Positions 19,201-59,400 of a stretch of 64,000 nucleotides of DNA are shown one piece after another. The stretch's first letter is position 1; each line of letters starts with the position of its first letter. This DNA comes from Mizuhopecten yessoensis (lineage: Eukaryota). The translations under genes were made by a program, and so were the position numbers. The notes under the pieces were generated by a model. That model did no database searches and had not been told where the DNA came from. It saw nothing but the letters and a program-made list of their open reading frames with translations. The stretch lies in NCBI RefSeq assembly GCF_002113885.1, contig NW_018407152.1, positions 91,092 to 155,091 of the forward strand, in the 5' to 3' direction.

Positions 19201-20639
19201 AAATGAACAAGGCGGCGATCAGTTGGTCGAGAGTAGATCAAGGAGGGTTACAAAAAAGTATGGCATTATCATACCAACCAAGGATTAGGCCACATAGTGC
19301 TAGCATACGCCTGTTTGACGTATAATCGAGAATAAACTAAAAGGAAAACCTTCGTTGCCCGCGGTGAGTAAGAAAGACCAAAGGCTGTTCCGCAAAGACT
19401 TGTAAATAAAACAATAGGCAGCCCAATTTACGTTTCATCTTGATCGGCTTTGAATGGTTTCCTGATGTTCTAAAGACCCGAATGTGTCCTATACAGCGAA
19501 ATCTACCCAGCATGGACTTGAATATCATTTTATTCCGTGGTTCCATCTAGTTTTGCATACTTAGGTTTGTCCAAATTATGAAACACCCGTGGTGTACCAA
19601 GTACCGTTGTCATTATTTGTCGAATATCAGGTCCGAAAATTAAAGGAGATTGAACAAAGAGTGAAACCTGTCCAATCATGTATCGTGATCATAACTGGCA
19701 GTCATTTAAAAAGACAAACACGTACAACTCGTAATGATATGTAAGAGGAAGATCTAGAAATGATGGAGAGGAGAGAAGTGTTCATGTGGTGGCGCACAGA
19801 AAATCAAATGTTTCATACAAAAATACGGACACAATCCATTCGTCTTTCACGATTTGAGGGGTTACGATTCCTATATCACCATAGGTGATAATCAAAATGA
19901 AAAGAGATCAAATGCATACCGAACAACAAAGAGGAATGCACCTCCTCTCATAGGAATGAAACGATTTCATACAGCTTGCAATTTCTCTGTACATCTTTGA
20001 AGAAACTGTTAAAAGATTTAAGCTAAGTAATTACAGGTTAAAACTTTCACAATAGTGAACCCTATCTCGAATAGCCTGGTGAAGAGTTTCTCAATTGCAG
20101 TTTTCTACTAGCGCTTACCCCTCCTCCCCCTACTTTAGAACTCTTAGAATCAGGTCAGACACGAAAGTGAGCAAACTTAATAGTTATTTTTAATCGTGTT
20201 ATTTTTCTAAAAAATCTAGAGACTGGTGCGAGTCCATATCTCGATCTGTTGTGACAGAAACAAGCTCTAAAATATACCCTTTCCACGACTTTAACTTACA
20301 AAAGTATTACATAGATTCCATGAAGATCAGTGAAACCCTCATTACAATATAAATAATAGTTAGTCTGGTATGTCTGTATGACAGAGGAGTTTATGACCTT
20401 GACAAATGTGTTTAGTGACTTCCAGATTAAGAATTTCGCAGAAAATTCCTCGTGGATATATTTGAGAATTTCAGAAACCAATGTCTTGGTTCATCCGGTG
20501 TAGACGTGGTCCAGGTTTTGCGTCTCCGAGCTTGACATGCGTCCAGCTAGAGCCTCTCTCAAGGACACTTAACATGCCTTTGTTGAGAAAGGTCCCTTAC
20601 GTGGTGGCATATCAATGATGACCCATTGACGCAACGGCC

Positions 20640-22680
20640 AATACCAATAACGAGTATGTCACCAAAAAAAAAATCAACAAGTACATCACCAAAACCAATA
20701 ACGAACAGTACGTCACCAAAACCAATTACTAGTATGTCACCAAAACCAATATTAAATACGTCACCAAAACCAATAACAAGTACGTCACCAAAACCAATAA
20801 CAAGTAAGTTACCAAAATCAATTACTAGTATGTCACCAAAACCAATTACTAGTATGTCACCAAAACCAATAACAAGAACGTCACCAAAACCAATTACTAG
20901 TATCTCACCAAAACCAGTAAGAAGTGTGTCACCAAAATCAGTAAGAAGTATGTCACAGAAACCAATAATGAGTAGGTCACCAAAACCAATAACGAGTACG
21001 TCACCAAGACCAATAACAAGTACGAAACCAAAACCAATTACTAGTATGTCATCAAAACCAATAACGAGTACGTCACAAAAACCAATAACGAGTTAGTCAC
21101 CAAAACCAATAACAAGTACGTCACCAAAACCAATTACGAGTACGTCACCAAAACCAATAACAAGTACGTCACAAAAACCAATAACAAGTACGTCACCAAA
21201 ACCAATAATAAGTACGTCACCAAAACCAATAACGAGTTAGTCACCAAAACCAATAATAAGTACGTCACCAAAACCAATAACGAGTACGTCACCAAGACCA
21301 ATAACAAGTACGTCACCAAAACCAATTACTAGTATGTCATCAAAACCAATAACGAGTACGTCACCAAAACCAATAACGAGTACGTCACCAAAACCAATAA
21401 CGAGTACGTCGCCAAAACCAATAACAAGTACGTCACCAAAACAAATAACAAGTAAGTTACCAAAACCAATTACTAGTATGTCACCAAAACCAGTAAGAAG
21501 TGTGTCCCCAAAATCAGTAAGAAGTATGTCACCAAAACCAATAACAAGTACGTCACAAAAACCAATAAGCAGTACGTCACCAAAACCAATAACGAGTACG
21601 TCACCAAAACCAATAACAAGTACGTCACCAAAACCAATAACAAGTAAGTTACCAAAACCAATTACTAGTATGTCACCAAAACCAATAACAAGAACGTCAC
21701 CAAAACCAATTACTAGTATGTCACCAAAACCAGTAAGAAGTGTGTCACCAAAATCAGTAAGAAGTATGTCACCAAAACCAATAACAAGTACGTCACAAAA
21801 ACCAATAACAAGTAAGTTACCAAAACCAATTACTAGTATGTCACCAAAACCAATAACAAGAACGTCACCAAAACCAATTACTAGTATGTCACCAAAACCA
21901 GTAAGAAGTGTGTCACCAAAATCAGTAAGAAGTATGTCACCAAAACCAATAACAAGTACGTCACAAAAACCAATAACAAGTAAGTTACCAAAACCAATTA
22001 CTAGTATGTCACCAAAACCAATAACAAGAACGTCACCAAAACCAATTACTAGTATGTCACCAAAACCAGTAAGAAGTGTGTCACCAAAATCAGTAAGAAG
22101 TATGTCACCAAAACCAATAACAAGTACGTCACAAAAACCAATAACAAGTAAGTTACCAAAACCAATTACTAGTATGTCACCAAAACCAATAACAAGAACG
22201 TCACCAAAACCAATTACTAGTATGTCACCAAAACCAGTAAGAAGTATGTCACCAAAACCAATAACGAGTTCGTCACCAAAACCAATAACAAGTACGTCAC
22301 CAAAATTAATAACAAGTACGTCACCAAAACCAATTACGAGTACGTCACCAAAACCAATAACAAGTACGTCACAAAAACCAATAACAAGTACGTACGTCAC
22401 CAAAACCAATTAGGAGTACGTCACCAAAACCAATAACAAGTACGTCACCAAAACCAATTACTAGTATGTCACCAAAACCAATAACGAGTACGTACGTCAC
22501 CAAAACCAATAACAAGTATGTCACCCAAACCAATTACTAGTATGTCACCAAAACCAATAACGAGTACGTACGTCACCAAAACCAATTACTAGTATGTCAC
22601 CAAAACCAGTAAGAAGTGCGTCACCAAAACCAATAACGATCGCGAGTACGTCACCAAAACCAATAACGAGTTCGTCACCG
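20640..22680. repeat. 24-bp minisatellite (~85 units) with 168-bp higher-order repeat
   Basis: Unit TCACCAAAACCAATAACAAGTACG; variant AGTAAGTTAC recurs at 21643, 21811, 21979, 22147. Confidence 0.95.
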
Positions 22681-27849: not shown

Positions 27850-28090
27850 AGAACCCCGGATGTAAACGTCACAGATGGAGAGGTCATAGTCACATAATAA
27901 ACATTCACCACTTTGTTGTTGAAAAGTACTTTGATTGGGAGGAATCTGTGATTGTATTTTCTCTATTTTTTTAAATCAGAAATGTCAACACCAGCAAGGA
28001 GACGCCTCATGCGGGATTTCAAAAGGTATGGGCATATATTTTACTGTATTTCTACTCGTACTGGAACAGATGATATCCAAAATGGCTACT
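27850..28090 (+). promoter_or_regulatory. Probable UBE2A promoter motifs
   Basis: ETS-like CCGGATGT near 27856, ACGTCA half-CRE near 27866, YY1-like CAAAATGGCT near 28078; motif matches only. Confidence 0.35.
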
Positions 28091-31000
28091 TTGTAAATGT
28101 TTTGATACTCCTCATACTACTTAAAATGTGACACGCATTAGTATCACGCATGTCGTATATATTATCGTTATGGTTCGATATTGCAGATTACAGGAAGACC
28201 CACCTGCTGGCGTAAGTGGTGCACCAACAGATAATAACATTATGTTATGGAATGCTGTTATATTTGGGTAAGTTCAGATTCTTCATAACAAGCTGTTTGA
28301 ACGTTCCAATGCTTTGTGTTTATTTGGCTTTCGTTCAATACGTTATTACAACCATTTGTCCATATATACAAGTTGATAATACATTATCAATGCTTGGTCA
28401 CATGAATGATTGAGATTCAAAATTTAGCTCACTAGTTAAAACTGACAATGTTGGTTTTGTATTCTGTATCATGTAGCATGTGTACAGGGATTTCCATCGA
28501 GGTACAGTATGTTTCGGTACGACGGTAATCCCTGTTTAATCTCCGTGACCGCTATGTCGACACATGAAGCACTGCTATTATTTTTCGTATACATTGTTTA
28601 TATTATCAATTGTGACATCATACATACGTGCCATTAGTGATCATATGATATACTATTCGTTCCTGGTCGGTTTGCCCCATTGTATAACTAGACTGTTTTG
28701 GATTGAAAATGGATCTCCGTCGAATTCTTCAATTGTAAACAATGAATACAGTAATAAAAAAAGAGTAACAACAGGTGATGTATGAAACTTCTAAGTTAGA
28801 CAAACATGTATAACCTTTTTTTTACTTTCCCCTTCTTTTATAACAAATGAGAAAATCACCTGTGCACAAACATATTTCAAGTTAATTCCTGGTAGATTGA
28901 AGAAGGAACAACATATATTTTAACTAGATCAGAAAATGTGATATACCATATGATGATGTTACAACAGTTCAATTTTGACAGATTATATATATTGTAAATA
29001 TCCTTTTTCATTATTCATTAATGATTCAGACTCTTCAAACTATGTTCTGGTTTGTTTTCATAATCAACGTTCAGTAATTCACCAAAAATGACCATATACA
29101 TATTGTATACCAAGCCATTATCATACTTGCCAGCTCTCCCTAATTTAGAGGGTGAGTCCCAATATGGACCCTAAAATTAAGAATTTCAACCAGTGAATTT
29201 GCTAAACTTTTCCGATTTTGTTAGATCTAATTATTTCACCTGAAAGAACAGCTCGAAAGATGCCATTTCAAAGTGTTATTTTTCTTATGGTGTAACACAT
29301 TTACTTTGTGGTGTTAGTTCTGAGCATGCATAAACTCCCCATTGGAAATTTCCAAAAGTTGGCATGTAGCTAGATATACATTATCCTGAATGGTTCTGTA
29401 TGTATGTGTATACTGAAATGAAAGTGAAAATAGTAAAATCCAGAAAATCCAGCAGTACAAATATGTATGTCAATAAAAAATTGATATGCGATTAAGTGAT
29501 AAACAATGGTTAAATTCATTTATAAACAAATTGTATTGAAAGATTGGGAAAATTTTGACATGAGATATATAATATTCAAAATTTATGAATATGTCTATTA
29601 GAGTCTTACAATATTAACCCTTTCACCACTGTAGACCATAATGGACTCATCCAGATCATGCATGGTAGAGTCTACTAAAGTTACATAGGGGTGAAAGGGT
29701 TAATGTAGATATATACTTCCTTTTAGAATATGCAGCTCTTGAATCTGATCTGCAGAAGATTCTAGGAAAGTTGGATGGTCAGAATATATGACTGGATATA
29801 TACATGATTGTATATGATCATTATAAACATTTCGCATCATAATTTGTGCTGTACTGGTGTATTTGGTGTAAAAATGTTTAATGTATATATTTATTTTCAC
29901 TATTTCAGGCCTCATGATACACCTTTTGAAGATGGAACCTTTAAATTAACTGTAGAATTCACAGAGGAATATCCTAATAAACCACCAACAGTACGATTTG
30001 TATCAAAAATGTTTCACCCAAATGGTAAGCAAGAAAAAAATGGATATCTTGACGACAAAATAATACATTTTATAGCATATTTCAACTTAATAACTTAAGA
30101 ACAATTAATTGGCTTATAGCCTAAAGTAGACAAGACAAGGTTTATCAAACAGGTTTTTGGGGAAGGCTCTAATGTAGTGAAGTATTAGCAATAATTAAAA
30201 TTAACTTTTGAGTTATTGTCATACATTGCATGTATACAGTATCACAACTTTGATGTATTGTCCATGTCAAAATACTGTATGGTTCGTTAAAATCTGTTTC
30301 AGTCTATGCAGATGGCAGTATATGTTTAGATATTCTACAAAATAGATGGAGTCCAACATATGATGCCTCTGCCATATTAACCTCTATACAGGTAAGTCAT
30401 CTGTTAAAGTTTTAGGGGATCTTCTAGCAGTCACTTGACAGTTAACTATAATTTAAAGGTTGTTACTGTTATGTTCAATTAATGTTCCTGTTACGTTCAT
30501 TGTAATATCAGAAACATATGATTGAAATCTAACATGGCAGTAACTTGTCGTAATGGATTTCTATCACCAGATATAAGACGTTATTAAAATTTGTCGTAAT
30601 GGATTTCTATCACCAGATATAAGACGTTATTAAAATACAGCTACTGTTGAATCATGTATTTGTGTACCAGTATGTTAATCCTAAACTTTTTTTATCCTAA
30701 GAAGTTATACCCCGGTAGTGATAGAATGGAAAATAACAACAGTGTAATTTGTCAAATTTTCAGACTTCAATACATAAACTAATTTACTATAAAACTTGTC
30801 TTCAAACATACGTATAAACCCAGCTTTGAGCCAAAGACTGTTGAATTTGTACGCTCCAAAAATGGATTTTGTGATATATATTGTTTTTTTTGCTTGAAAC
30901 CTGCTGCGAGCAGAATATATATTAAACACCAGTGTTACATTTATAATGATTAATAATTAATATACAGTAAAACCCTGTGTAAAGCCACCCGTTTAGCCGC

Positions 31001-33407
31001 CTAACCAACATATCGCCATTAATTTACTCAGAACGGATTTCCCCCCAACGTTTATGCACACGTTGTAATGCCAAACCCGCATACGGCCATCCTCCATCAT
31101 ATTCCCACAACAAATGCTTAAAATGACACTATTTTGACCTCGGTAAATACTGCCAATTTGAGTTGAGTATATCCGGTGACAGGAATGTAACATACATGTA
31201 CATTGTATTGTTACATGTGACTGCCGACTGACCAGATACTGCTAAACTTGTTATACCGCTAAAATCACAGAGGACAGAAGGTGGCGGTATAACAAGGTTT
31301 TACTATTAGCGTGAACCAGTTCTTCTTTATATAGAAGCTTGTTTTGGCTGTAACTTTTATAAACCATAAATGATATCTTTATGAAACTAGAAGTAGGTCA
31401 GAGGTTACTTAAATTGAAGATGCCAATCAAATATCAACATTGACTATTGAGAGGAGATATATATACAAATGTATATGTTTTAGTTCACACCCCCAGCCCA
31501 CTTCAAAGCTTATTTACATTTATATATAATATGTTTCCCAAAAAACGTACAATTTTTCAGAGTCAGTTTTTTGTGTTGAAGAAAAACTATCAAATACTGT
31601 CACTAACTTGTTACAGTACTTATAAAACCTATATCATAAACTATAACCTGACAAATTGAACCTTGTATCCTAAAATTATTTCTTTACAACACTTCATATA
31701 TATAAACTCCTGTATATAAAGAATCTATACCTAATACAAAAGCTAGTTTGTTTGACTGGCTGCTAATTATTTCAGTTTTTTAAAATTAAATTACCCATGA
31801 ATGTTATGTTTTTATTATTAAAAAGAATTATGTAAAAAAATAATTGAAATACAAACTATATGTACAATTAGTTATGCATTCAGGTATAATGCGATGTTAG
31901 TTTTGGCAAATTGCGTTGATAAAAAAGTATGTGTGAAGAATGTTTTATCGCGTAATGGTTTAGCCATTAAGGCAACACCCGAAACAATAACAGTCATTTC
32001 TTTTGCATTTTAGTCTTTACTACATGATCCCAATCCTAATAGCCCTGCAAACAATGAGGCTGCACAGTTGTATCGAGAAAATCGTCGGGAATATGAGAAA
32101 AAAGTTCAATCTATAGTTCAAGAAAGTTGGACGTCCGATAGTGAAGATGAGGAGGAACCTGATAAGAAATCATAGCATTTCATGAAAAATATAAACAAAA
32201 ACTTTATTTGTGCAACTTACAAGCATGTTCTCAACTTTGAGAATCATCATGCCGATTTCGGAGGCCTTTTCCCCCCTCCTTTTTTGAAGTTGAAAGTGGT
32301 TTTTGAGCAACTTGAACTGTTGGTTTGAAGGAAGGACAGTTTTTTGCTGACAGTTAAGATTTTTCATTTGAATAATATGTGCACATGTTAATGTTTTTGA
32401 AAAAGAAATTAGCATGTCTTATAGATTAAACAATATATTACAGATTGGTGATATTTCCTTGCACTGCATTAAATATTGTTGAGGAGATCGTTTGTATAAT
32501 ATCAATATCGCAGTAAACTTAATACTTACATATAATATGGATATGTAGTTTTCTTTTTACAGTTATTTTATTTATTGTTTTATCTGCTTAACTTTTTTCA
32601 TTGTCTTGTTTTTGTGTTGTTTTTTCCATTTGTTTGAAAAATTGATCATGTATTTACCATGCAACATTAGTATATAGATGTCGTACAAGAGTTTTGATGG
32701 AAAAATTGTCATTCCGTGATGAATTTTATGTATTACATTTACATTCATGTCATGGAATTGCCAAAACAAAGAACCTGTGATAATGCATACAGTTTACACG
32801 ATTCCATAGTGTACAACTCTGAAAGATGATTTTCTCTGTCGAAAGTTTAGATACAAATACTGTAATCATCCTGAAATATTATACCAAATTTACAGATATA
32901 AAGACTTCAAACTTGAATTATTAAAATTGACTTATTCTCTGGAATAAACTTTCTGAAATTTAAGATCCAGTATATTGACTTTAACAGAATCTGATAAAAA
33001 TACAGATGTATTGTAAAATGTTTTGATACAAATTTGCATCACACAAGTTTATCAAGTATAATCTACAAGAAAATGACCAATTGAAAAAAAAATAACACTC
33101 TCTGAAATTAGAACCTGAAATTAGAACCTGAAAGTAAAAACCTTCAAGTTTATATACTCTACAATCTTTGACTTTGATAATGTTGCATCGATTTGGATCG
33201 ACGAAAAAGTAAGAGAATGCGATAACAAATCTTACCAAGGGGAAAAATTACCTTTATTTCTGTTCCTTTCAGTCTTTGTTAGATGAACCCAATCCTAACA
33301 GTCCTGCAAATAATGTCGCGGCACAACTGTATCGGGAAAACCGTCGTGAATATGAAAAGAGAGTTAAAGCAGTGGTCGAGGAAAGTTGGATTTATCTGGG
33401 GGATTAA
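27982..33407 (+). CDS. UBE2A: Ubiquitin-conjugating enzyme E2 A/B (RAD6), 154-aa isoform with distal last exon 5B
   Basis: join(27982..28025,28187..28267,29909..30024,30303..30391,33273..33407): [28 protein letters not shown]...[25 protein letters not shown]...[13 protein letters not shown]...SWIYLGD*; catalytic Cys88 TGT at 30323-30325. Confidence 0.97.
29618..29699. mobile_element. piggyBac-like MITE
   Basis: TTAA-CCCTTTCACC...GGTGAAAGGG-TTAA; similar-sized relative at 51512-51594. Confidence 0.7.
30965..31305. mobile_element. Tc1/mariner (pogo-like) MITE, degraded
   Basis: TA-CAGTAAAACCCTG left end, CAAGGTTTTTACTA right end. Confidence 0.5.
32014..32175 (+). CDS. UBE2A: RAD6 alternative proximal last exon 5A with acidic tail (163-aa isoform)
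   Basis: Acceptor tttcttttgcattttag, phase 0, [53 protein letters not shown]; AATAAA at 32943 before exon 5B. Missed by the ORF track. Confidence 0.92.
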
Positions 33408-34011
33408 ACACCTTCATCGTCATCACCTTTCTCATCATTTTCATTTCACTTGTACCTTTGCCATTTTGTGATGTACATGTTCTTGTCATTTCAAATTGTT
33501 TTGTGAAATTCATTGTTAAGATTTGTTCGAGTTTCAGGAAGCTTGAATATTGTTGCAAAATTATAGTTAATGGTTGGGAAATGTTTCTGTGGCAATTTCT
33601 TTACCTTTTGCATAAGATTTACCAAATATATTAGTAAGAGGACTTCCAAAAGTGGAAGCATAAATAATATTGCTTAAATTTGAAAATGCTGCGTGATGAA
33701 AAGTGTGCTTTAATTGTGATGAACAGTGTATAGGTATCGGAAGTAAGGTGTGTTATTATATTTAAGTAAGTATATGTCTAGTTATGCTAGATTTACCAAC
33801 TTTCTTAGCTTGTCAACCAAAGTCAAAGTTGATGAGAAATTATTTCAATGGATTGATTGTTGACCTAATTAAGAATGGCTTGTTACTATATAAATTAGTG
33901 AAAATCCACTACAGGGCTCATTTTGTTGTTCAAACAGAACCTGCATTTGTTTTAAGCCTTCTTGCACATTGTGTTTTAATCTGGAGTCTGTACAACAAGC
34001 AAAATATTTAA

Positions 34012-34403
34012 TAGGGCTGCAACGAAATGCATTCCTCATGATATGATACAAATCGCGGTGTGATGCTTTCAATACGATTTTTATCACAATACAAATATCT
34101 CCTTAAAGGTCAACTTCATAATGATTGCGTGCAGAATTTTGTCAAAGACTAAAATAGTAAATACATGTACTATTGAAATATATTTTTGTATAATTTCTAG
34201 TACTTTTGGGTATGACTGCACAGTGGACCACATCTTTACTGAAGGATTAAAAAAATATAAGTTCACTTTTTAGGAGTTTGATAAAAATTATTGATAATTT
34301 ATGTACTGTTAGTCTATCACGATACAGGAAAACAAAACAATTTGGTACGAAACACAAGAAAGTATCGTGATACAATACAATTTGGTATATTGTTGCAGCC
34401 CTA
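34012..34403. mobile_element. hAT-type MITE in the UBE2A distal 3' UTR
   Basis: TAGGGCTGCAAC / GTTGCAGCCCTA TIRs, subterminal GATAC motifs, similar AT-rich flanks. Confidence 0.7.
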
Positions 34404-36013
34404 AATTTAAGTGTTGCATACGCTGCTATTACTTATCTGTATTTGATTGTATACATGTCCAATGCCAACTGATGTATGTACTGAACATCGGACTCTGGCA
34501 TTGTGCTTGGATGTCCAATATCTACAATTTGATATAATCTACCTGTATTGATGTATTAACACATATTTCAACAAATTGGTTGCAGATTGAAATCTAAAAG
34601 GAGCACATGTATGTCAATTTGTAATACATGTAATAAAATCATGATTTTGATTAATGTTTTTTTTTTAATTACCCGTAGCATCTGGTGTGGATTTGAAGAG
34701 AAACCTCTTTGTAAGAGAATGTATGGTTAAATTTCATTTTAGAAATAATTCAGTTTCATGTTTTTTTTTGTGCTGAAGTAATTTTCCAAGAATGCAGCCA
34801 ATTTATAATTAATACGAGATATCATTACATTTCTACCTGTAATAAATGACAGATTGATAATTTTGTTTTTTCTCCCCAGTTTTACATGGAAAAAGACAAT
34901 CCATTTTGACTATTTCCTCATTGTGTCACTACAGCATACCGGTTTCCTATTTCTGAATCTCGGTCTCGGGTGGTCATGATTGCATTATTGCAAGAGTCCC
35001 AAAACGTAAGATCATTTGATTGAGCTGTTGGGCCTTGGCAACATGACATGTTACAAAAGCTATGAGCATTGATGTACAGTGTTTTCTTACATTTTCACTC
35101 TTGTTCATTGCTAGATTTTTAGACTGGGAAGTTCCTTCTTTTTGATGTTATTGTAGAAAGAGGCTGGCCAATTTTTGTGCTAGGTGCACTTAAAGTGTTG
35201 GATTGTGAAAATCCTTGTTTTTGTTTTAATCTTGAGATATATAACAATAACTTTAGTATAACATGATTTTGGTTATTTGAATTAAATCGGTGCAAGAGAG
35301 ATGCTTTTTTTGTGTTTATTTATCAGTGTTTTCACTACTGTATAACTTGATAGACATGTGTTTACACGGGAAGCGCTATTGTAAATGTAAGTCATTTAGC
35401 AGCACCAGCCTTCACATAGTTCTGTCAGAAGAACAATAGATAAACGAAAATAATTTGCATAGCTTGTCAAAAACAATGAAATGCATCCAATTTTCTTGAC
35501 TGTCATGCATAGATTTGTCTAGTAGAAACATTTGTTCTCCAATTTTTCATCTTGATCACTGTATTTTATCATATATTTACACTGCATTTGTCTAGTTGAC
35601 ATTTTGTTAAAAAAATGCATCTGCATGATTTTAAAGCAGTTTGTAGATTCTGTTATTCTGTGTGAAATCTCCACATTTTGTATTTGAAAGAGATATTGAG
35701 AATAGCATATGTATGTTCACAGTAGACATCAGACAATGATATATCAAGACATTTCTAAACAGTATTTTATTCACTGGATCTTTTCTTTATTATTGTCAGC
35801 ATTGTAATTTTCTTTGTTAAGTTACCGTTATCTACACAGGAAAATCAAAGAACAAAGGTGATATATGTGTAAAGAAACATCTTCCTTCCTGATCGGGTGA
35901 CTGCCGTTGCACGTCATGTAAATGTAGTGGTATGTATAGCCAATGTGTGGATGTACAGACATCTCTGTTTATAACAGAAAGTAGCTTTTGCTAATACTTG
36001 TTGTCTTGTCATA

Positions 36014-36198: not shown

Positions 36199-37340
36199 TG
36201 TAAACAGTATGACAAGTGTACTACATCATATTATCAAATGTAAACAAGTCACTGCCGACAAGTTCTAAGCCTGTGAAGTTTAAGTCCACCTCTATTCTAA
36301 ATACCAGACATTTATATTTGAAAGTCCTATACGGATCAGTATAATAAATGTATGTTATACAGATAAGAGCCTAGGTTACAGTTTATCAATGGGCATGCTC
36401 GTTATCCTGGATTCTACTGATGACGGGGTATGATGTTCCTACTGTCCTATAAGTAGCATGTCTGTATGACATACATTAAGCTTATATAGGCAGAACATTA
36501 TAGGTAATGGTTCTGTGATCTGAGAGTGTGAACTGATTAGGCTTCCACTGTCCGGATATTACTATGTATTTGTATAGTAATTGCATGTATTATTGGACAT
36601 GTTATTGATAACAATCCACTCAAACTAATCATATTGTATCAACACATTGTCTAGTGTGATCATTGTCAAAGTGCAAAATGAAATAAATTTATTTAAATAC
36701 TTATTTGGAGTGATTTTTCTCTCTCTTGATAAATATACTAGTTGAGCAGATTTTGCACAAAGGAGTTTATCAAATAAAAACAAAAAAACAGGAGTTCACT
36801 TGTGTAAAACTCCCTACCCCCAGAAAGTGGAAAAGTGTGGCCTTCGACCTTTTAATCTTGACCAATGACCACCAAATTTAATCTGACATAGAGCTGGAGG
36901 TGATTATACTGTGGTGTTAATTATGAACTACTGTAAAAGTGGAAATTGATTCAGTGTTGAAAAACTTGCATCCAGTAAGTTAGCATGATAATATTTACGT
37001 GATAAATATTGTTTTAAGAACCATTGCCAAAGTGAAAACTACCACACTGCGATCAACTTAAAATTTCCACATTTCCAGGGATTCATGACATCTTGTACAC
37101 AGACTTCTTATTTAACAAAATTTAAAAAAAGTTCAGGTAGGAATGATGATTTCAAGAAACAGAAAAATTGGAAAGATTCAAATCAGAGAACAAAATTCAA
37201 CATTTTATTGGAAGATAAATTAAAGTATAAACAAGTGTTTTGCTTCCCTTAAGTCCCACAGAAATAACTTCCTCAGAAAGGAAGTAAGCTGCACCTATCT
37301 GGTGAGTATTTATAACCAGGGTTGTCATGTGATATCATCG

Positions 37341-40300
37341 TCAGATGGCTAACGGCCTTTGGGGCATACACAGGTTGTAATGGGCGTGCTGATCCCAGAA
37401 GTCCGGTCCTTTCCAGCCACACCATCCCTGGGAAATGGAAAACGTGTACAGATACATCACTAGTACCATAAATATAGCGCTCTTATGAGAGTAAGAGTAC
37501 TAAGACTTCTTATAAAACTTAAATTAAGTGTACTTCAACAGAAAAATAGGTTTACTATGAACTCACTGAATTAGAATATATATATATTTGGGTTATATCA
37601 ATTCCAATTGAATCACATCAAGGAATTGCCACTACAACAAATTTTGTTTTGCAGAAATGATCCAAGTCTCATGATGTATATTATAACTTATGTTTTACTA
37701 AAATCATAATTACAAAACCTAGTGTATCATTGTTTCTTAAAGTAAGCAGCTTCTTCATGTTTTTTTTTTTTTATCCATGACATAGTTCAAAAGAGTACAA
37801 CAAAACACCCACAAACATTGGCATTATGTATTTAATTAGTGCCATCTACTTGATTTAAGTAGGAGATGCTTCATTATAAGTTTTGCTGACTTTCTAAAAC
37901 TCCTTCAGCACACATGTGATATTTAAATTCCACTGCTACTAGTACTGTACTACAGATCTCACTAAAGACCAGGCAGAAGTGGGATGGACCTTGTCCTACA
38001 CATCGACCACTAAAACATGTACACTGTTCACAGCAAAGTGTTAAGTGTAACAACTGTTACTTCCCCGAATCATTTTATGAAAATGATAACACACATATTT
38101 GAAAGCATAATTTGTATTTCTATGCATCTAAACAATTTTTTTCTTAGAAGACATGACACAAATACACAAATGCACAAAGTCAATAGCTCAGCAAAATTAA
38201 GAAGATTTACATACTTTATCCAGAATGACTTTCAGATCTTCAGCACCAGTATAATGAGGATCAAGGATGAGGAATTTCAGGTCTCCAGTCACGTCATTGA
38301 AATCCACCCCTAGGATGGTATGAGCCAATACACCACCACCTACAACAGGTTAAAACAGGGTCAGATAGGCTATTTTACATGTGTTTCAATTAAATGTACG
38401 AAAAAAATACTTGCCATGATTTGCAGCAAACTCTGACAAGGCAGAATGTCAATAGATCCCACAGTGTTCTGTCTTTCACAAAAGCCACATTTAAAAAATT
38501 AGTATTTTGGATATGGCAGTTAAATTATTCAGTTAAAGTTAAATTTACCTATCATGATTGGAGTCCCTTGTGTCTGAAAGTGGAGAGCCAGTTCTCTCCC
38601 TTTAGTTGTCAGCTCTGCACCAGTACTGACAAACATAATCTTTGAAGTTACCTGAAAACAGAAAGTGAAACAATAAGGAAATGTTAAATAGGGACTTGAT
38701 CATTATTGCATCTAGCTGTAAAATACAAAGAAGCTAAAAATAATGTTAATTGGAAGCAGGAAAATAATCCTGTTTGTAAAATGTCTAGAACTCATTCAAA
38801 TCTGTAAAATGTTTCTCTGAACGCCTACACTAAAACCTCAATATAATGCCCATTGTTTCATTTACTTCCTCACTTACTGCCAACATATTTCAAGGTCCCT
38901 TTTTCTTTCCAATTCTTTTATAGGATTATCTCAATTTTTCGCCAAATGCCTTTAAAAGGTTGAATTTCTCTGGACAAATGACACAGCAGTACATTAGGGT
39001 CTTATTCTACTTCGAGAACACAACCTAAAACTTTGTATATATCTGTTTGTCAACTTAGGCTGACAACCTTGTACATGTACTTTGTAATTTAATTTGTCAA
39101 TAAAACCTGTGGATATTAGTTTAATTGGCTCTGCAATAAGATGGTTCTCGTGTAAATGTATGTTGCATACCCCTAAAAGGTGGTCCAGACAGTAGCTGAC
39201 CTCCATTGACCCGATCCACTGGCGTGACCCCACAAATTTGGGATCCTTGTCCCCAACATCAACAAGAGCCTGAAATAAATACCACACTATTCAATGCTAG
39301 TAATATAACGTGTACACATTCTACTACTGTATGACAAGTAATCGTGAAAAGACTAAAACGTCAACTTGCATTTTGTATACTTATCACTTAATATTTTCCT
39401 TCTACATTTAACTGAAAAAGTATAAAATCAATGACACTGTTAACAGGAGTGTTACTTTTCCTAGCTGAAATGTGAAGTGGAAACAAGATGCTTCTCTCGA
39501 GATCAAGGGAACAGTCCTGGATACAGTTTTCACTCCAACAATATAAACTTCATCTTCCTCTCTCAGCGATATCAAACATCAAATTTAATGTTACACAATT
39601 CTTTTCAAAACATTTTTGATATTAGAACAATCAAACTACGTGTTTACTGTTCAGAGCCCGGACCCTCTGCCGACAAGATTTAAAGGGATTCTACCCCTTT
39701 GATTTTAAATGGAGACTAATGTCATCAATTGGAACATATTTGATAGCCATTACTGCCAGCTAACTACTGATTAATATGATGACCCTAAGTCTTCTTTAAC
39801 TTTAGACAAAATCAATAATATATTTTAAAATATGTGACTGAATGTGACGTAGGAATGCAGGTCATCTACTTTAACAAATTATAAATCTCTATATAATACT
39901 CTCTAATTAAAATCATGTCATGTCTCTATAGCTAGCTTCATTTAGAATCAATGTGATATGTTTCGACGTAAAAAAATCAGGGCCCCATGTCACTGCTTTT
40001 TACCTTCTTTAGTAAGGTAGCCATTGACACACGTACCTGCTGCACTTCTTTGTGACTTGCGACAGGTTTTTCTGTGTAGCCCTGCAGCTTGAACCAGGAC
40101 ATGAGAGTTTGCAGAGAGCGGTAAGCACAACCCCACTTGTTGTCATCAAACCTGTCCTGCATGTAATGGTGGTAGCTATAGAGACCATCCACTAGGTACT
40201 GTGTCCCTCCCTTCACTGTAACAAAGCTCATTGATAGATACAGGTTCTCAATTGACAACAAGGAGCCAAAGCTCTCAATACTACCAACAGTGTTTCTGGA

Positions 40301-43300
40301 ATTAGTCAGCACTTTAAACCTGTCATTTACTGCTTCATTTACTGCTTGTTTTCTTTTCTAATCTTTGACTTGTGATGCTAACCTTCTTGACATGGAATGC
40401 TAACCTCTTTTACTGGTAATACACATTCCCTGACAGGTGATGCCTACCTCAATGACAGGTGGTGCTCGCCTCCCTCACATGTGGTGCTTACCTCCCTGAC
40501 AGTTGATGCCTAACTTAATGACTGGTGGTGCTTGCCTCACTGACAGGTGGTGCTTACCTCACTTACAGGTGATGCCTGTATAACTCACTAACAGGTGATG
40601 TTTACCTCCCTAACAGGTGATGTTTACCTCCCTAACAGGTGATGCTTACCTCCCTAACAGGTGATGCTTGCCTCCCCGACAGGTGATTCTACCTTCCTGA
40701 CAGGTGGTGCTTACCTCCCTGACAGGTGGTGTTTACCTTCCTGACAGGTGATGCTTGCCTCCCTGACAGGTGGTGCTTACCTCCCTGACAGGTGATGCTT
40801 GCCTCCCTGACATGTGGTGCTTGCCTCCCTGACAGGTGGTGCTTACCTCCCTGATAGGTGATATTAATTAAAGTACCTCCCTGACAGGTGATGCTTGCCT
40901 TCCTGACAGGTGGTGCTTGCCTACCTGACAGTTGGTGCTTACCTCCCTGATAGGTGATATAAATTAAAGTACCTCCCTGGCAGTTGATGCCTTCCTCCCT
41001 GACAGGTTGTGCTTACCTCCCTGACAGGTGGTGCTTGCCTCCCTGACAGGTGGTGTTTACCTCCCTGACAGGTAATTCTTACCTCATTGACTTGTGATGC
41101 TTACCTCCCTTAATTGTGATGCTTACATCCCTGACTTGTGATGCTTACCTCCCTGACAGGTAATTCTTACCTCATTGACTTGTGATGCTTACCTCCCTGA
41201 CTTGTGATGCTTACCTCCCTTACCTCCTTGACTTGTGATGCTTACCTCCCTGACTTGTGATGCTTACCTCCCTGACTTGAGATGCCTGTATGAGGGTTGA
41301 TCAGATACCCATAACTGGAGCGATCCTCATGAAACATCACAGCATTGCATCTCCTAAATAAGGGCTGGTTTTCTGGCAAACCCAGCATTCTGTGGACCTC
41401 TGTCCGTCTTTGTACTGCCAAAGTAAAGGTCAGTTTAGTTCATGCCCTGGTGACAATAACACTGGCAGCAGTAGCTATTGTTGTTGCATCCTAGTTCATA
41501 TAGAAGGATAAGGAAAGTGTACACGTTTGTGAAAATCATGTAAGTTTTGTTTCTTTGGAGAAAACCTTGGTTGTCATTGATCAACAAGTAAAGAATAAAT
41601 AAGTAAACAATACAAACATAATCAAATTAAAAAATATATCTACAAATATTGTTATTAAGTTAAACATGTGGTTACCATCAGTTGGAATGATCAACAGATT
41701 CTATTGAACCTGTATATGTCCTGGTACTTAATATATCACCTGACTGTTCATCTGACATACTGCATGTGGGGTTCTTAACTGAACTTATGCCATACTATAC
41801 TAAACATATCACTTACCTAACTGTTCCTCTGTCATATTTTGTAAGTACACAACTGAGAATATGGCCTGTAGACCACCTGGCTGGAAGTGGTAGGGAACAG
41901 GTTTACTGAACTTCTCACTTTTTGCCTGAAACAGATTTTTTTTTGTAATTTTCATATTAATTTCCGCTTTATATGATTTCATTACAACTCAAGGTCAATT
42001 ATGATTCATTATATCAGAGACCTACCTCCTCAAATAGGGTTGTCAGTGACCTACAACTAGATAATCATTGATCTTCTCAAATAGGGTTGTCAGTGACCTA
42101 CAACTAGGCCATGAGTGACCTTCTTAAAAAGGTTAACGTTGACCTACAACTAGGCAAATCTGACTTACTTAAAAGGGTTATAAGTGACCTACAACTAGGC
42201 AATTAGTGACTTACTTAAAAGGGTTAGTAGTGACCTTCAACAAGGCCATGAGTGACCTTCTTAAAAAGGTTAACATTGACCTACAACTAGGCAATTGGTG
42301 ACTTACTTAAAAGGGTTAGTAGTGACCTACAACTAGGCCATGAGTGACCTTCTTAAAAAGGTTAACGTTGACCTACAACTAGGCAAATCTGACTTACTTA
42401 AAAGGGTTATAAGTGACCTACAACTAGGCAATTAGTGACTTACTTAAAAGGGTTATCAGTGACCTACAACTAAACTAGGCCATAAATGACCTACTTAAAA
42501 GGGTTATCAGTGACCTACAACTAGGCCATGAGTGACTTGCCATGAGTGACCTACTTTACAGGGTTAACAGTGACCTAAAACTAGGCAATAAGTGACCTAT
42601 TTAAAAGGGTTAAAAGTAACCTACAGCTAGGTTATAGTTGACTTACAACTGTGTCCTTTATGATACAGGCGGCCATGGCTGTGAGCTGGTGACACACAGC
42701 TGTACTGAGAACTGTGTGTAGATCTGTGACCGGTAAGTCTCTGCTGACCACTGCCACAGCATCCACAGGCAGGGTCATCTCAACGCTCTTATAGTTGCCT
42801 GGAAATACATATCATATTTGTTCAGTGGTCGCAAACAAACTTCTGTATATATTAACTTACCAACAACTTGGCAAAAATTACTGAATTATTCTCATGAAAG
42901 TTAATAATAAAAGACAGTTTTGAAATACCCAAAGTTTGAGAGTTACCGTGTTCTATAATGAAATCAGTTGAGTGATCGATATTGACCTGGTTATTAAACA
43001 AAGAAGCTGGCAGCACAGAATTTCATCAGAAGTAATGTTTCTTAAGTTGTATTTTTATACTAAGTGACCTTGTTTCTGACAAAAGAAATTCAAAAGGTGA
43101 ATTCATACATGATGCGATGTTTGTGTAGACATATACTGTATGAAATTAACAAGGAATATAGTTCTATTCAAATATACATGTAAATGCAGTAACAGTGACA
43201 TGAGTTGATGTTTGTGTAGACATATACTGTATGAAATTAACAAAGAATATAGTTCTATTTAAATATACATGTAGTAACAGTGACATGATTTGATGTTTGT

Positions 43301-46300
43301 GTAGACATATACTGTATGAAATTAACAAGGAATATAGATGTAGTAACAGTGACATGAGTTGATGTTTGCGTAGACAGATACTGTATGAAATTAACAAGGA
43401 ATATAGTTCTATTTAAATAAACATGTAGTAACAGTGACATGAGTCGATGTTTGTGTAGACATATACTGTATGAAATTAACAAAGAATATAGTTCTATTTA
43501 AATATACATGTAGTAACAGTGACATGAGTTGATGTTTGTGTAGACATATCGGAGGTTTGTGACAATCAAACAACACATGATGACTGTCGTAGTTTTGTGC
43601 ACTGTACACATATATATATATACAGGCAGATCCCTATCTACCCTCAACATCTCATTCACAGACTGTTGTAGTGTTGTGCACTGTACATATATATATACAG
43701 GCAAATCCCTATCTACCCTCAACATCTCATTCACAGACTGTTGTAGTGTTGTGCACTGTACATATATATATACAGGCAGATCCCTATCTACCCTCAACAT
43801 CTCATTCACAGACTGTTGTAGTGTTGTGCACTGTACATATATATATACAGGCAGATCCCTATCTACCCTCAACATCTCATTCACAGACTGTTGTAGTGTT
43901 GTGCACTGTACATATATATATACAGGCAGATCCCTATCTACCCTCAACATCTCATTCACAGACTGTTGTAGTGTTGTGCACTGTACATATATATATATAC
44001 AGGCAGATCCCTATCTACCCTCAACAACTCATTCCCAGACTGTTGTAGTGTTGTGCACTGTACATATATATATACAGACAGATCCCTATATACCCTCAAC
44101 AACTCATTCCCAGACTGTTGTAGTGTTGTGCACTGTACATATATATATACAGGCAGATCCCTATCTACCCTCAACAACTCATTCCCAGACTGTTGTAGTG
44201 GTGTGCACTGTACATATATATATATATACAGGCAGATCCTTATATACCCTCAACAACTCATTCCCATACTGTTGTAGTGTTGTGCACTGTACATATATAT
44301 ATACAGGCAGATCCCTATATACCCTCAACAACTCATTCCATAGTGTTGTAGTGTTGTGCACTGTACATATATATATATACAGACAAATCCCTATCTACCC
44401 TCAACAACTCATTCCCAGACTGGTGTAGTGTTGTACACTGTACATATATATATACAGGCAAATCCCTATCTGCCCTCAACAACTCATTTCCAGACTGTTG
44501 TAGTGTTATGCACTGTACATATATATATACAGGCAGATCCCTATAGACCCTCAACAACTCATTCCATAGTGTTGTAGCGTTGTGCACTGTACATATATAT
44601 ATATATATACAGGCAGATCCCTATATACCTTTAACAACTCATTCCCAGACTGTTGTAGTGTTGTACACTGTACATATATATATACAGACAAATCCCTATA
44701 TACCCTCAACAACCCACTTCCAGACTGTTGTAGTGTTGTGAACTGTACATATATATATACAGGCAGATCCCTATATACCCTCAACAACTCATTACCAGAC
44801 TGTTGTAGTGGTGTGCACAGTACATATATATATACATACAAATCCCTATCTACCCTCAACAACTCATTCCCAGACTGGTGTAGTGTTGTACACTGTACAT
44901 ATATATATACAGACAAATCCCTATCTACCCTCAACAACTCATTCCCAGACTGTTGTAGTGGTGTGCACAGTACATATATATATACAGACAAATCCCTATC
45001 TACCCTCAACAACTCATTCCCAGACTATTGTAGTGTTGTGCACTGTACATATATATATACAGACAAATCCCTATCTACCCTCAACAACTCATTCCCAGAC
45101 TGTTGTAGTGTTGTGCACTGTACATATATATATATATACAGGCAGATCCTTATATACCCTCAACAACTCATTCCCAGAGTGTTGTAGTGTTGTGAACTGT
45201 ACATATATATATATATACAGGCAGATCCCTATCTACCCTCAAAAACTCATTCCCAGAGTGAAGTAATCTTGGATTTGGTTTAATCACTTTGTATAAAGTT
45301 TGAGATGGAGTCAAGTCTTACCTAGTGAATGTTTTATGACGGGACAACACGATGGAACAGCATGAAATGAAGACTTTTTGTTTATCTGGTGATACATGGA
45401 GAACTGTAGTGTAGACTGGAAATAAATAAATATCCTGGTAAACAAGTATTATTACTGTTCTTACCCTGCAGTATAACGCTTCTTCCTTCACCAGAAATGT
45501 CAAAAAGCAACTGACTGAATAAACTGTAGCTCCTGTATTTATATACTATTCAAATTAAGTCCATAATTACAGAGACTTCTTGGTGTAAAAGTTCTTTTGA
45601 AAATCAGGCAGCTTTACTGAAGGTAAAATATGATGTTCATCAGGGATTTTGAAACAAAATATTTTGCAAATTGAAACAATAATAGAATACATGGTTATAA
45701 CTGTCTTAAAATATAATGTCTAGTTGTGCTTCAATTATAAAGATGAAGTTGCACCACTTTTTTTATCTATCCTTAGCCTTAACCAAATAAACCTTGTTTG
45801 TTATGATGCAATGTATTGACAACACATGCCCAGTATGCTTATTATGGTAATGATCAATCACATCAGATTAAACTGAAATAGATTATACTCAATTTCTCAT
45901 ATACATATACACAATGAATATAGACCTTATGTTTTTCGTTTTAGCTTAATGATAGAATGTTTGTTGTATATCAATTTATAATGCATTGTCTATAGATATG
46001 ACAGGCCATGACAACAATCAGAGAATGAGATGCGATCCATTACCAGTTGTTCCTTTTTTGACTTTCTGCCACCTTCACCGAACCCATCCCCAGTTTTGAT
46101 ATGGGAGTGGAGATCAGAACAGGAAGAATCTCGGGACAGACCACATAGCTGGTCTGATCCCACCAGGATGTCACTGTCTTTAAGATGATATAGCACACTC
46201 CTGGACTGTGATGCATTGCACAATTCATGTATTTCCTTCTGAAGATTTGCCTTCCATATATCTGAAATAACGAGAGACAATGGAGCCTGTATCACTGTAG

Positions 46301-56400: not shown

Positions 56401-59400
56401 TCTGGACAAACAGGGTGATTCCAATATACCCCACCCCCTAACGTTCTTGCAGGGGGTATAATTAACGTGTGGATCAATGATATTTGGCTTGAAGCGAATG
56501 CTAGGACAAAGGCCTACTTTTTTTTCTTTTTCAAATGAATGAGCTTGGCTGTGGTCAAGATCACAACTCTGAAATCTTTTTAAACATTTTAAAAACATTA
56601 CTATAATGATCTCTAAGAACTATAGATTGCATATTGTACATTTATTCAGGGTCACAGACGTAACGAAAGTCATGATTTAGCCAGTATTGCATTTGATCTC
56701 AATTCAGGGTCAGACATAATGTCATGATTTAGCCAGTATTTCATTTGACCTCTATTCAGGGTCATAGACGTAATGTCATGATTTAGCCAGGATTGCATTT
56801 GATCTCTATTCAGGGTCACAGACGTAATGTCATGATTTAGCCAGGTTTTCATTTGACCTCTATTCAGGGTCACAGAGGTAATGTCATGATTTAGCCTGGC
56901 TTGCATTTGATCTCTATTCAGGGTCACAGAGGAAATGTCATGATTTAGCCAGGATTGCATTTGATCTCTATTCAGGGTCACAGACGAAATGTCATGATTT
57001 AGCCAGTATTTCATTTGACCTCTATTCAGGGTCACAGAGGTAATGTCATGATTTAAATTAGCCAGTATTTCATTTGACCTCTATTCAGGGTCACAGAGGG
57101 AATGTCATGATTTAGCCAGGATTGCATTTCATCTCTATTCAGGGTCACAGAGGTAATGTTATGATTTAGCCAGGATTGCATTTGATCTCTATTCAGGGGC
57201 ACAGAGGTAATGTCATGATTTAGCCAGGGTTGCATTTGATCTCTATTCAGGGTCACAGAGGTAATGTCATGATTTAGCCAGGATTTCATTTGATCTCTAT
57301 TCAGGGTCACAGACGTAATGTCATGATTTAGCCAGGATTGCATTTGATCTCTATTCAGGGTCCCAGAGGTAATGTCATGATTTAGCCAGGATTTCATTTG
57401 ATCTCTATTCAGGGTCACAGAGGTAATGTAATGATTTAGCCAGGATTGCATTTGATCTCTATATCATGGTCACAGAGGTAATATCATGATTTAGCCAGGA
57501 TTGCATTTGATCTCTATATCATGGTCACAGAGGGAATGTCATGATTTAGCCAGGATTTCATTTGACCTCTATTCAGGGTCACAGACGTAATGTCATGATT
57601 TAGCCAGGATTGCATTTGATCTCTATTAAGGGTCACAGAGGTAATGTCATGATTTAGCCAGGCTTGCATTTGATCTCTATTCAGGGTCACAGAGGGAATG
57701 CCATGATTTAGCCAGGATTGCATTTGATCTCTATATCATGGTCACAGAGGTAATGTCATGATTTAGCCAGGATTGCATTTGATCTCTATATCATGGTCAC
57801 AGAGGTAATGTCATGATTTAGCCAGGATTGCATTTGATCTCTATTCAGGGTCACAGAGGAAATGTCATGATTAACCAGGATTGCATTTGATCTCTTTTCA
57901 GGGTCACAGAGGTAATGTCATGATTTAGCCAGGATTGCATTTGATCTCTATTGGTTACCTTTATGGTACAAGGTTCTGATGTAGACATGTGGAAACAAGA
58001 CACTAGTCCCCTTCAAACCTATTCACATCTCATTGTCAGTTGTAAATGCTCCTGATCAATAGTATCAACTATAACAATCGACTGATCAATAATTTTATAC
58101 ATTCTTGTTAAAAAGAAAGAAACATGGGCAATATAACAGTCACTGTACAAGGTTCTGATGTAGACATGTGGAAACAAGACACTAAATGCAGTTACTGAAC
58201 AGCTCCTCAATATATGAAGCAGCTTCATGTTCACAAAATATGGTATCCCAGAAATATTCTTATCAATTTATCAGGCAGATGGATTTTCCAAGGTGGCACC
58301 ATTGGTAGCACTGTATGCAGGAAACACTGCCAAGCTTGTCCAGGAAGTGGAAAAAGCAATCCGGGTCACTCAGGAGGATGCTATTGCTGTTGAATGTGGA
58401 TTGGCTGGTATACATGTCCTATAAAAAACAATAATTTTAAAGAATGTTTTTAACAATTTATATCATACTTACTTCTATAAATACCAGAAAGAATGAGGTG
58501 ACAGGTGATTGTAGGAATTTTGTTATACTTATAAAGTAACTGAACAGAATTATACCCTTTTACCTGCATTTCTGTTTTTATAAATTGTACAGCTAAAGAT
58601 GTTCATATTTTAGTCCCCTTTCAACCTATTCACATCTCATTGTCAGTTGTAAATGCTCCTGATCAATAGTATCAACTATAACAATCGACTGATCAATAAT
58701 TTTATACATTCTTGTTAAAAAAAAAGAAACATGGGCAATATAACAGTCACTGTACAAGGTTCTGATGTAGACATGTGGAAACAAGACACTAGTCCCCTTC
58801 AAACCTATTCACATCTCATTGTCAGTTGTAAATGCTCCTGATCAATAGTATCAACTATAACAATTGACTGATCAATAATTTTATACATTCTTGTTAAAAA
58901 AAAAGAAACATGGGCAATATAAAAGGTCATAGGGGTCAAATAAATTAAAACCTTGAACATATTCTTCTGAATTCTGTGTCTAGGGTGATAATATTTTACC
59001 AGCAGCATGAAGGGCCTTAATTGATCCTTATCTAAGGTCACAGGTATCTATGGTTAAATCTTAACACAATTTTCTCTGAATAAGTAATAAGCAAGTGATG
59101 ATGATATTTTGCAAGTAGCATGCTTTAATGAAGGTCTATTGTATTTGACTTTGTCATACTTTCAAGGTCACAGGGCAAACATTTGTTAATACATAACACA
59201 ACTTCTTTTGAATACTCCCGAGGTTTTTGGCTATGATATTTGGCCATTGGCTGGAATGGAAGGCTATCAAGTTTGTTCAATTAAAAGACCTTGACCTATA
59301 TTCAATTTACATGGGACCATAAGCTACTTATGAATAACCACAACCCCTGATCATGATGTGATATATGGCCAGTAGCATGCTTTGATAAAAGGCTATCTCA

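Follow-up and report, generated by a model that had tools for sequence, protein, structure and literature searches.

Tandem last exons behind one splice donor give a scallop RAD6 gene two alternative C-terminal thirds

Can a single RAD6 gene supply an animal with two different ubiquitin-conjugating enzymes and, if so, how old are the two forms and what sets them apart? The question is raised by a stretch of 64,000 nucleotides from the scallop Mizuhopecten yessoensis (the window), which holds one RAD6-family (UBE2A/B-type) ubiquitin-conjugating gene, on the + strand, with two successive last exons, 5A and 5B (A and B for short; Table 1). Exons 1–4 total 330 nt, every intron is GT-AG, and overhanging read ends at 29908 carry the 3′ end of exon 2. 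The donor at 30391, closing exon 4, is common to both last exons, each of which has a polypyrimidine tract and AG, an open phase-0 frame and its own stop; joined in frame to exons 1–4, they yield proteins of 163 aa (5A) and 154 aa (5B). The locus therefore presents two homologous last exons in tandem, of equal phase and behind a single upstream donor, and the coordinates, frames and stops of the original prediction, which had called two intact phase-0 terminal exons with separate acceptors, all held. Since each last exon has its own stop, exactly one of them is translated per mRNA. The isoforms are common over residues 1–110 and differ at 114, 115, 125, 140, 142–144, 146 and after W149; both retain HPN, Cys88, the N-terminal Arg7/Arg8/Arg11 and, as had been claimed for both exons, Ser120-Pro121.

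Table 1 Features of the scallop RAD6 locus, in window coordinates
Feature	Position	Strand	Remarks
RAD6 coding exon 1	27982..28025	+	44 nt, start codon
RAD6 coding exon 2	28187..28267	+	81 nt
RAD6 coding exon 3	29909..30024	+	116 nt, HPN motif
RAD6 coding exon 4	30303..30391	+	89 nt, catalytic Cys88
Last exon A (5A), coding part	32014..32175	+	residues 111-163; H114-D115, E125; orthologous exons in many spiralians
3′UTR of A mRNA, also intron of B mRNA	32176..33272	+	read depth 7–28
Last exon B (5B), coding part	33273..33407	+	residues 111-154; D114-E115, V125; short hydrophobic end
Common long 3′UTR	33408..35880	+	still high read coverage at 35880

Both products are full RAD6-type members of the RAD6/UBE2A/UBE2B/UBC-1/Ubc6 E2 family, N-terminal arginine helix included. 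Their closest relatives are UBC-1 and UBE2A/B (E 1e-14 to 1e-18), with other E2 families at 1e-5 or weaker, and their best solved relatives are UBC-1, UBE2A/B, plant UBC1 and yeast Rad6, those of 5B being C. elegans UBC-1 and UBE2A/B. Searches were made exon by exon, or at full length with the natural transcript contig L009 and the protein P0377; a single-sequence structure model had a pLDDT of 40, and no reading rests on it. The exon-by-exon search found no second RAD6 locus in the genome: 5A and 5B matched only each other, and exon 3 matched, besides its own locus, only distant E2 paralogues (identity <=54%). A second gene copy or a pseudo-exon is ruled out by this search together with the junction reads given below. 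Given junctions in all RNA runs, intact frames, low dN/dS and conservation across phyla, it is scarcely conceivable that either exon is an assembly artefact or a dead copy.

Over the core the two exons are identical at 91/117 nt and 31/39 aa, leaving 8 of 39 residues different, and 14 of the 31 identical residues use different codons, in line with the earlier remark that shared residues are often encoded differently. Between 5A and 5B dS is ~1.9 and dN ~0.10, which gives a dN/dS of ~0.05 rather than a value near 1. Against the closer (mollusc- and annelid-like) orthologous exons dN is 0.03–0.12, with synonymous sites near or at saturation. The dS of ~1.9, the dN/dS and the cross-phylum conservation sustain the proposal of an old duplication under purifying selection. 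A recent, species-specific duplication was rejected, a tree with scallop A and B as sisters being excluded (AU p=0.003).

Are both exons used? The RNA evidence consists of four raw RNA runs from three studies, without tissue labels. Reads splicing into 32014 were found in every one of them: the 5A junction (30391>32014) is covered by 8, 20, 6 and 12 reads and the 5B junction (30391>33273) by 5, 6, 3 and 7, for totals of 46 and 21, with both junctions in 4/4 runs. The share of 5A is thus ~69% of junction reads (95% interval 56–79%), and proximal-site competition is the default explanation for this 2:1 ratio of A to B. No read in the four runs carries an A-to-B splice joint, and A-to-B splicing in scallop was rejected on this ground.

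The original prediction saw in the pair a tissue or germline switch in splicing and polyadenylation, by which a tailed enzyme tuned to chromatin, its UTR short, is exchanged for a general, tail-less enzyme whose UTR is long. This would fit the acidic A tail of nearly all spiralians sampled and the tissue specificity of many old duplicated-exon events in human (PMC9741552). However, the 5A fraction is 0.62–0.77 in each run, with no between-run difference (chi-square p=0.70, from small counts in runs without tissue labels), and the 3′ ends do not follow the expected division. Read depth between 5A and 5B is 7–28, compared with 0.1–1.7 in the true upstream intron, and in two runs it equals or approaches the depth of the A exon itself. 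Hence much A mRNA continues through B into the common long 3′UTR, so that 5B also lies inside the 3′UTR of read-through A mRNA and there is no clean swap of a short UTR for a long one; the proximal exon does not simply end at a poly(A) site of its own before the distal exon.

A possible proximal end exists nonetheless. Putative poly(A) hexamers in the A 3′UTR are ATTAAA at 32425, 32468 and 32920 and AATAAA at 32943; the AATAAA predicted after each exon is therefore present behind 5A, but it is not the main end of the 5A mRNA, because coverage runs past it in three of the four runs. In one run six molecules end at 32513, behind the ATTAAA hexamers at 32425/32468, and depth drops after 5A in the two random-primed runs; a fraction of the A mRNA may stop at about 32.5 kb, although the depth dip at 32490–32689 could also reflect mapping loss in T-rich sequence. 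A segregating T>A at 32426 (~60% of reads, two runs) converts ATTAAA to the canonical AATAAA and could shift the proximal-ending share of A mRNA. At the distal side the 3′UTR is still highly covered at its last listed position, so its true end lies further downstream, where AATAAA at 36343, 36682 and 36773 are candidate signals. Loci of other animals have the same layout: in the spliced transcript contigs L006 and L007 exon 4 is joined to A, and B with its acceptor follows farther along the 3′UTR. In L003, L035 and L093 the interval from A to B is free of AATAAA and ATTAAA. Given the read-through, this layout and the hexamer-free loci, the event consists mainly in choosing one of two 3′ splice sites and is not a short/long UTR swap. 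With the polarity of the tail reversed in arthropods as well, a switch of the kind originally proposed is quite improbable.

Other features of the window lie beside this event. An intronic repeat at 31045–31300, with a 16-bp hairpin (31244–31259 / 31284–31299), looks like a non-autonomous transposon fragment, and its part at 31197–31235 attracts a pile of reads that stem from a related 65-nt tandem unit located elsewhere. Long tandem-repeat arrays with spurious open frames occupy 20560–22410, 43500–45260 and 56670–57460. UFSP2 (Peptidase_C78) adjoins RAD6 at 37200–40357 (-) and, in another locus, at L003:13509–13772, both convergent; in L093:488–676 it lies upstream of RAD6 on the same strand, and the window, L003 and L093 share this conserved microsynteny.

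What distinguishes the two enzymes was first put down to the tail, acidic in one and absent from the other. The scallop 5A tail has 14 residues after W149, of which 7 are acidic and 2 basic, and spiralian A tails are nearly always acidic. The CK2-type sites attributed to it exist in scallop, as two CK2-consensus serines (151, 153), but orthologous A tails do not conserve them, and many lack serine altogether. As the defining contrast the tail fails: thrips A ends two residues past position 149, whereas thrips B has a longer, acidic end, and acidic tails occur on B proteins of thrips, crustacean, chelicerate, tardigrade and nematode; a bryozoan-like locus (L035) has tails on both A and B. The constant difference instead lies in the core, at 114–115, 125 and mostly 131 and 146. 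E125 is found in 133 of 153 xD segments, and the 148 DE segments have L or Q at 125 in 125 cases and E146 in 147, a tally that includes the short hits P0092 and P0150, which match the vertebrate last exon and are possibly mammalian; of the contigs retrieved, none had a human appearance. A constant core combined with a varying tail carrier suggests that the tail is a lineage-specific addition. In spiralians it sits on A, in arthropods and nematodes on B, so a division of labour based on the tail cannot be all of the conserved function.

The pair is spread widely. Exon 4 is followed first by an xDP-type A and then by a DEP-type B, both with intact AG acceptors, in Brachionus (L089), Dimorphilus (L090) and Thrips palmi (L092), in worm-like contigs (L034, L037–L041), in the bryozoan-like L035 and in L003, L004, L023 and L093; molluscs, annelids, rotifers and insects have the pair in identical order. 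For Nucella, Magallana, Elysia crispata, Gryllus, Cotesia and Timema the same exons are revealed by public gene models in which A and B are fused; annotations that fuse A and B or call B a separate gene include P0252, P0362, P0387, P0414–P0417 and L089:6011–6303. In scallop no read of the four RNA runs supports a fused A+B product. The name ‘isoform X1’ in Brachionus, Thrips and Homarus indicates that automatic annotation has already registered isoforms. In the bryozoan-like loci (L033:260–463, L035:841–1593) a donor follows the A stop at a distance of 32–41 nt, and in the transcript of L033 this donor is apparently spliced onto B, so that B becomes spliced 3′UTR of the A mRNA.

The pair is also dispensable, as is evident from Lottia and Bugula, which show no B within 8 kb, and from Seison, which has an intronless A-type RAD6 gene. 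Octopus, owing to gaps, is uninformative on this point. The sampled nematode and vertebrate RAD6 proteins are of B type only, and the dipteran reference protein is of A type. From these distributions, losses of one exon appear to be common and repeated. The worm-like contigs have, next to the A+B gene (L034, L037–L041), a second, apparently A-only paralogue (L015, L018), and Helobdella has separate A-type and B-type models (P0356, P0358, P0371); it is possible that the isoforms were split after gene duplication in these animals.

For the origin of the pair we used a tree of 40 columns comprising A and B exons, molluscs, annelids, rotifers, arthropods, nematodes, fish, sponge- and coral-like loci and fungi. 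All B exons fall on one side (76/80) and the spiralian A exons form one group (97/79), which joins the fungal sequences (84/77, weak). The earlier assignment of residues agrees with this sampling, given that the xDP...xEAA pattern of 5A matches fungal, plant and protist RAD6 and the DEP of 5B matches vertebrates and nematodes. Arthropod A exons stand apart from spiralian A, next to B, and the monophyly of A is not rejected (p=0.36). With a recent duplication rejected and dN/dS at ~0.05, the pair is most likely at least as old as the protostome ancestor, and a single duplication at or before that point would be the simplest reading.

Which exon came first is a near-even choice between an A exon that is ancestral by descent, old and lost several times, and an original B exon from which A would have reverted. 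Vertebrate UBE2A/B carry an extra intron (26/90 split). Scallop exon 3 is without it, and the coral-like L095 and sponge-like L097 keep it; these two and the other sponge-like loci (L098–L100) have only B, directly after the common exon 4, and the claim that A is ancestral is therefore unproven. B may accordingly be the ancestral animal exon, with A derived, either in the protostome stem or independently in spiralians and in arthropods, by reversion to xDP/E125, a scenario to which we give slightly less than an even chance. It accords with these B-only loci, with arthropod A lacking E125 and lying beside B, and with the finding of no A exon in any animal placeable outside protostomes, in a sample that has no echinoderm, hemichordate or amphioxus loci. 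However, it needs about three reversions to a pan-eukaryote state, it runs counter to the weak grouping of spiralian A with fungi, and the A exon of L093 links the arthropod and spiralian types, with S114 as in the former and E125 as in the latter. The absence of A from a few loci is moreover weak evidence, as losses are frequent, and the sponge-like and coral-like labels, hence the taxa of L095 and L097, are inferred from repeats, neighbour genes and sample type.

The swapped segment makes up one third of the enzyme core, covering helices 3 and 4 and loop 8, where the gateway S120 lies. Yeast Rad6 requires residues 141–149 to bind Rad18 and 150–153 for Ubr1, and its acidic tail of 23 residues plays an important part in activity (PMC9630792); W149 and E150 touch Bre1 (PMC10018343), and the tail helps the enzyme to associate with basic complexes, histones and ribosomes among them (PMC9215706). 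Of the eight core differences, four (142–144, 146) lie, as does the whole tail, in or beside these regions of contact with Rad18, Ubr1 and Bre1. Another two lie at 114–115, where the human UBE2A substitution D114V lowers activity ~1.5-fold (PMC6717574).

The two forms might of course be nearly equivalent enzymes, each constrained simply through being translated and either of them losable. The apparently A-only cases (Lottia, Bugula, Seison and the worm paralogues), the B-only nematode and vertebrate proteins, the small number of core differences and the fast-evolving rotifer B exon all speak for such equivalence, but residues 114–115, 125, 131 and 146 stay A/B-distinct across phyla, and it is difficult to see why several phyla should have retained both exons if neither brought an advantage; this makes equivalence unlikely. 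We instead consider it probable that the RAD6 last exon was duplicated in tandem in ancient times and that the copies are exploited through alternative 3′ splice-site choice to make two forms differing in E3 and substrate contacts. The exon-4 donor joins the proximal acceptor A in about two-thirds of cases, by junction reads, or skips to the distal B, and many A mRNAs retain B and the long UTR untranslated. As judged from the yeast and human work, the C-terminal swap would retune E3 and substrate contacts, not catalysis: A would be, in spiralians, the tailed form, more processive on basic substrates, and B the UBE2A-like form, the two being co-expressed with no strict switch. By analogy, the most likely outcome is co-expression of two RAD6 forms that differ in E3 affinity or in processivity. 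A more tentative extension, possible but short of an even chance, is that protostomes keep two specialised RAD6 enzymes per gene, A with the xDP/E125 surface long present in eukaryotes and B with the DEP surface of animals, differing in E3 or substrate preference. Model organisms have kept different exons (A in dipterans, B in nematodes and vertebrates), and their RAD6 proteins would hence be non-orthologous over the last third.

The RAD6 pair belongs to a known class, tandem duplicated terminal-exon substitutions, of which it is an unusually old case. In human, C-terminal swaps are enriched and make up 77 of 236 tandem duplicated exon substitutions (PMC9741552), and as in the described events (PMC9741552, PMC8373072), the scallop has homologous 3′ coding exons that serve as alternatives and are old, constrained and expressed. 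Compared with the human class, the RAD6 swap spans a third of a compact enzyme core and occurs across protostome phyla; UBE2 is not mentioned in the text of PMC9741552. The 3′ variable regions of Drosophila PGRP-LC, CG42235 and Pip (PMC6191721) likewise place alternative duplicated 3′ cassettes behind one donor, but these use docking/selector RNA pairing, whereas in RAD6 no such pairing exceeded shuffles in 150-nt windows at 10 loci, a simple test that is blind to distant or gapped pairings. Isoform A resembles yeast Rad6 in its acidic extension after W149 (PMC9630792, PMC9215706), of 14 residues versus 23 in yeast, but tail length and carrier exon vary by phylum, so the tails need not be homologous. 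In vertebrates the diversity of RAD6 comes from gene duplication, UBE2A and UBE2B both being of B type, whereas the scallop obtains two types from one gene by splicing. The literature searched contained no published description of a RAD6 last-exon splice event, and the pair is apparently undescribed.

For annotation the finding is a warning, given that several public models fuse A and B into a false protein or split off B. The surfaces with which RAD6 serves N-degron turnover, H2B ubiquitination and PCNA-dependent damage tolerance belong in part to the swapped segment, and mutation of human UBE2A in leukaemia blast crisis affects one of the diagnostic sites, 114. The protostome split is >500 million years old. 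Two C-terminal thirds kept for that time constitute a natural experiment on the residues that govern E3 choice and on the role of the acidic tail in animals.
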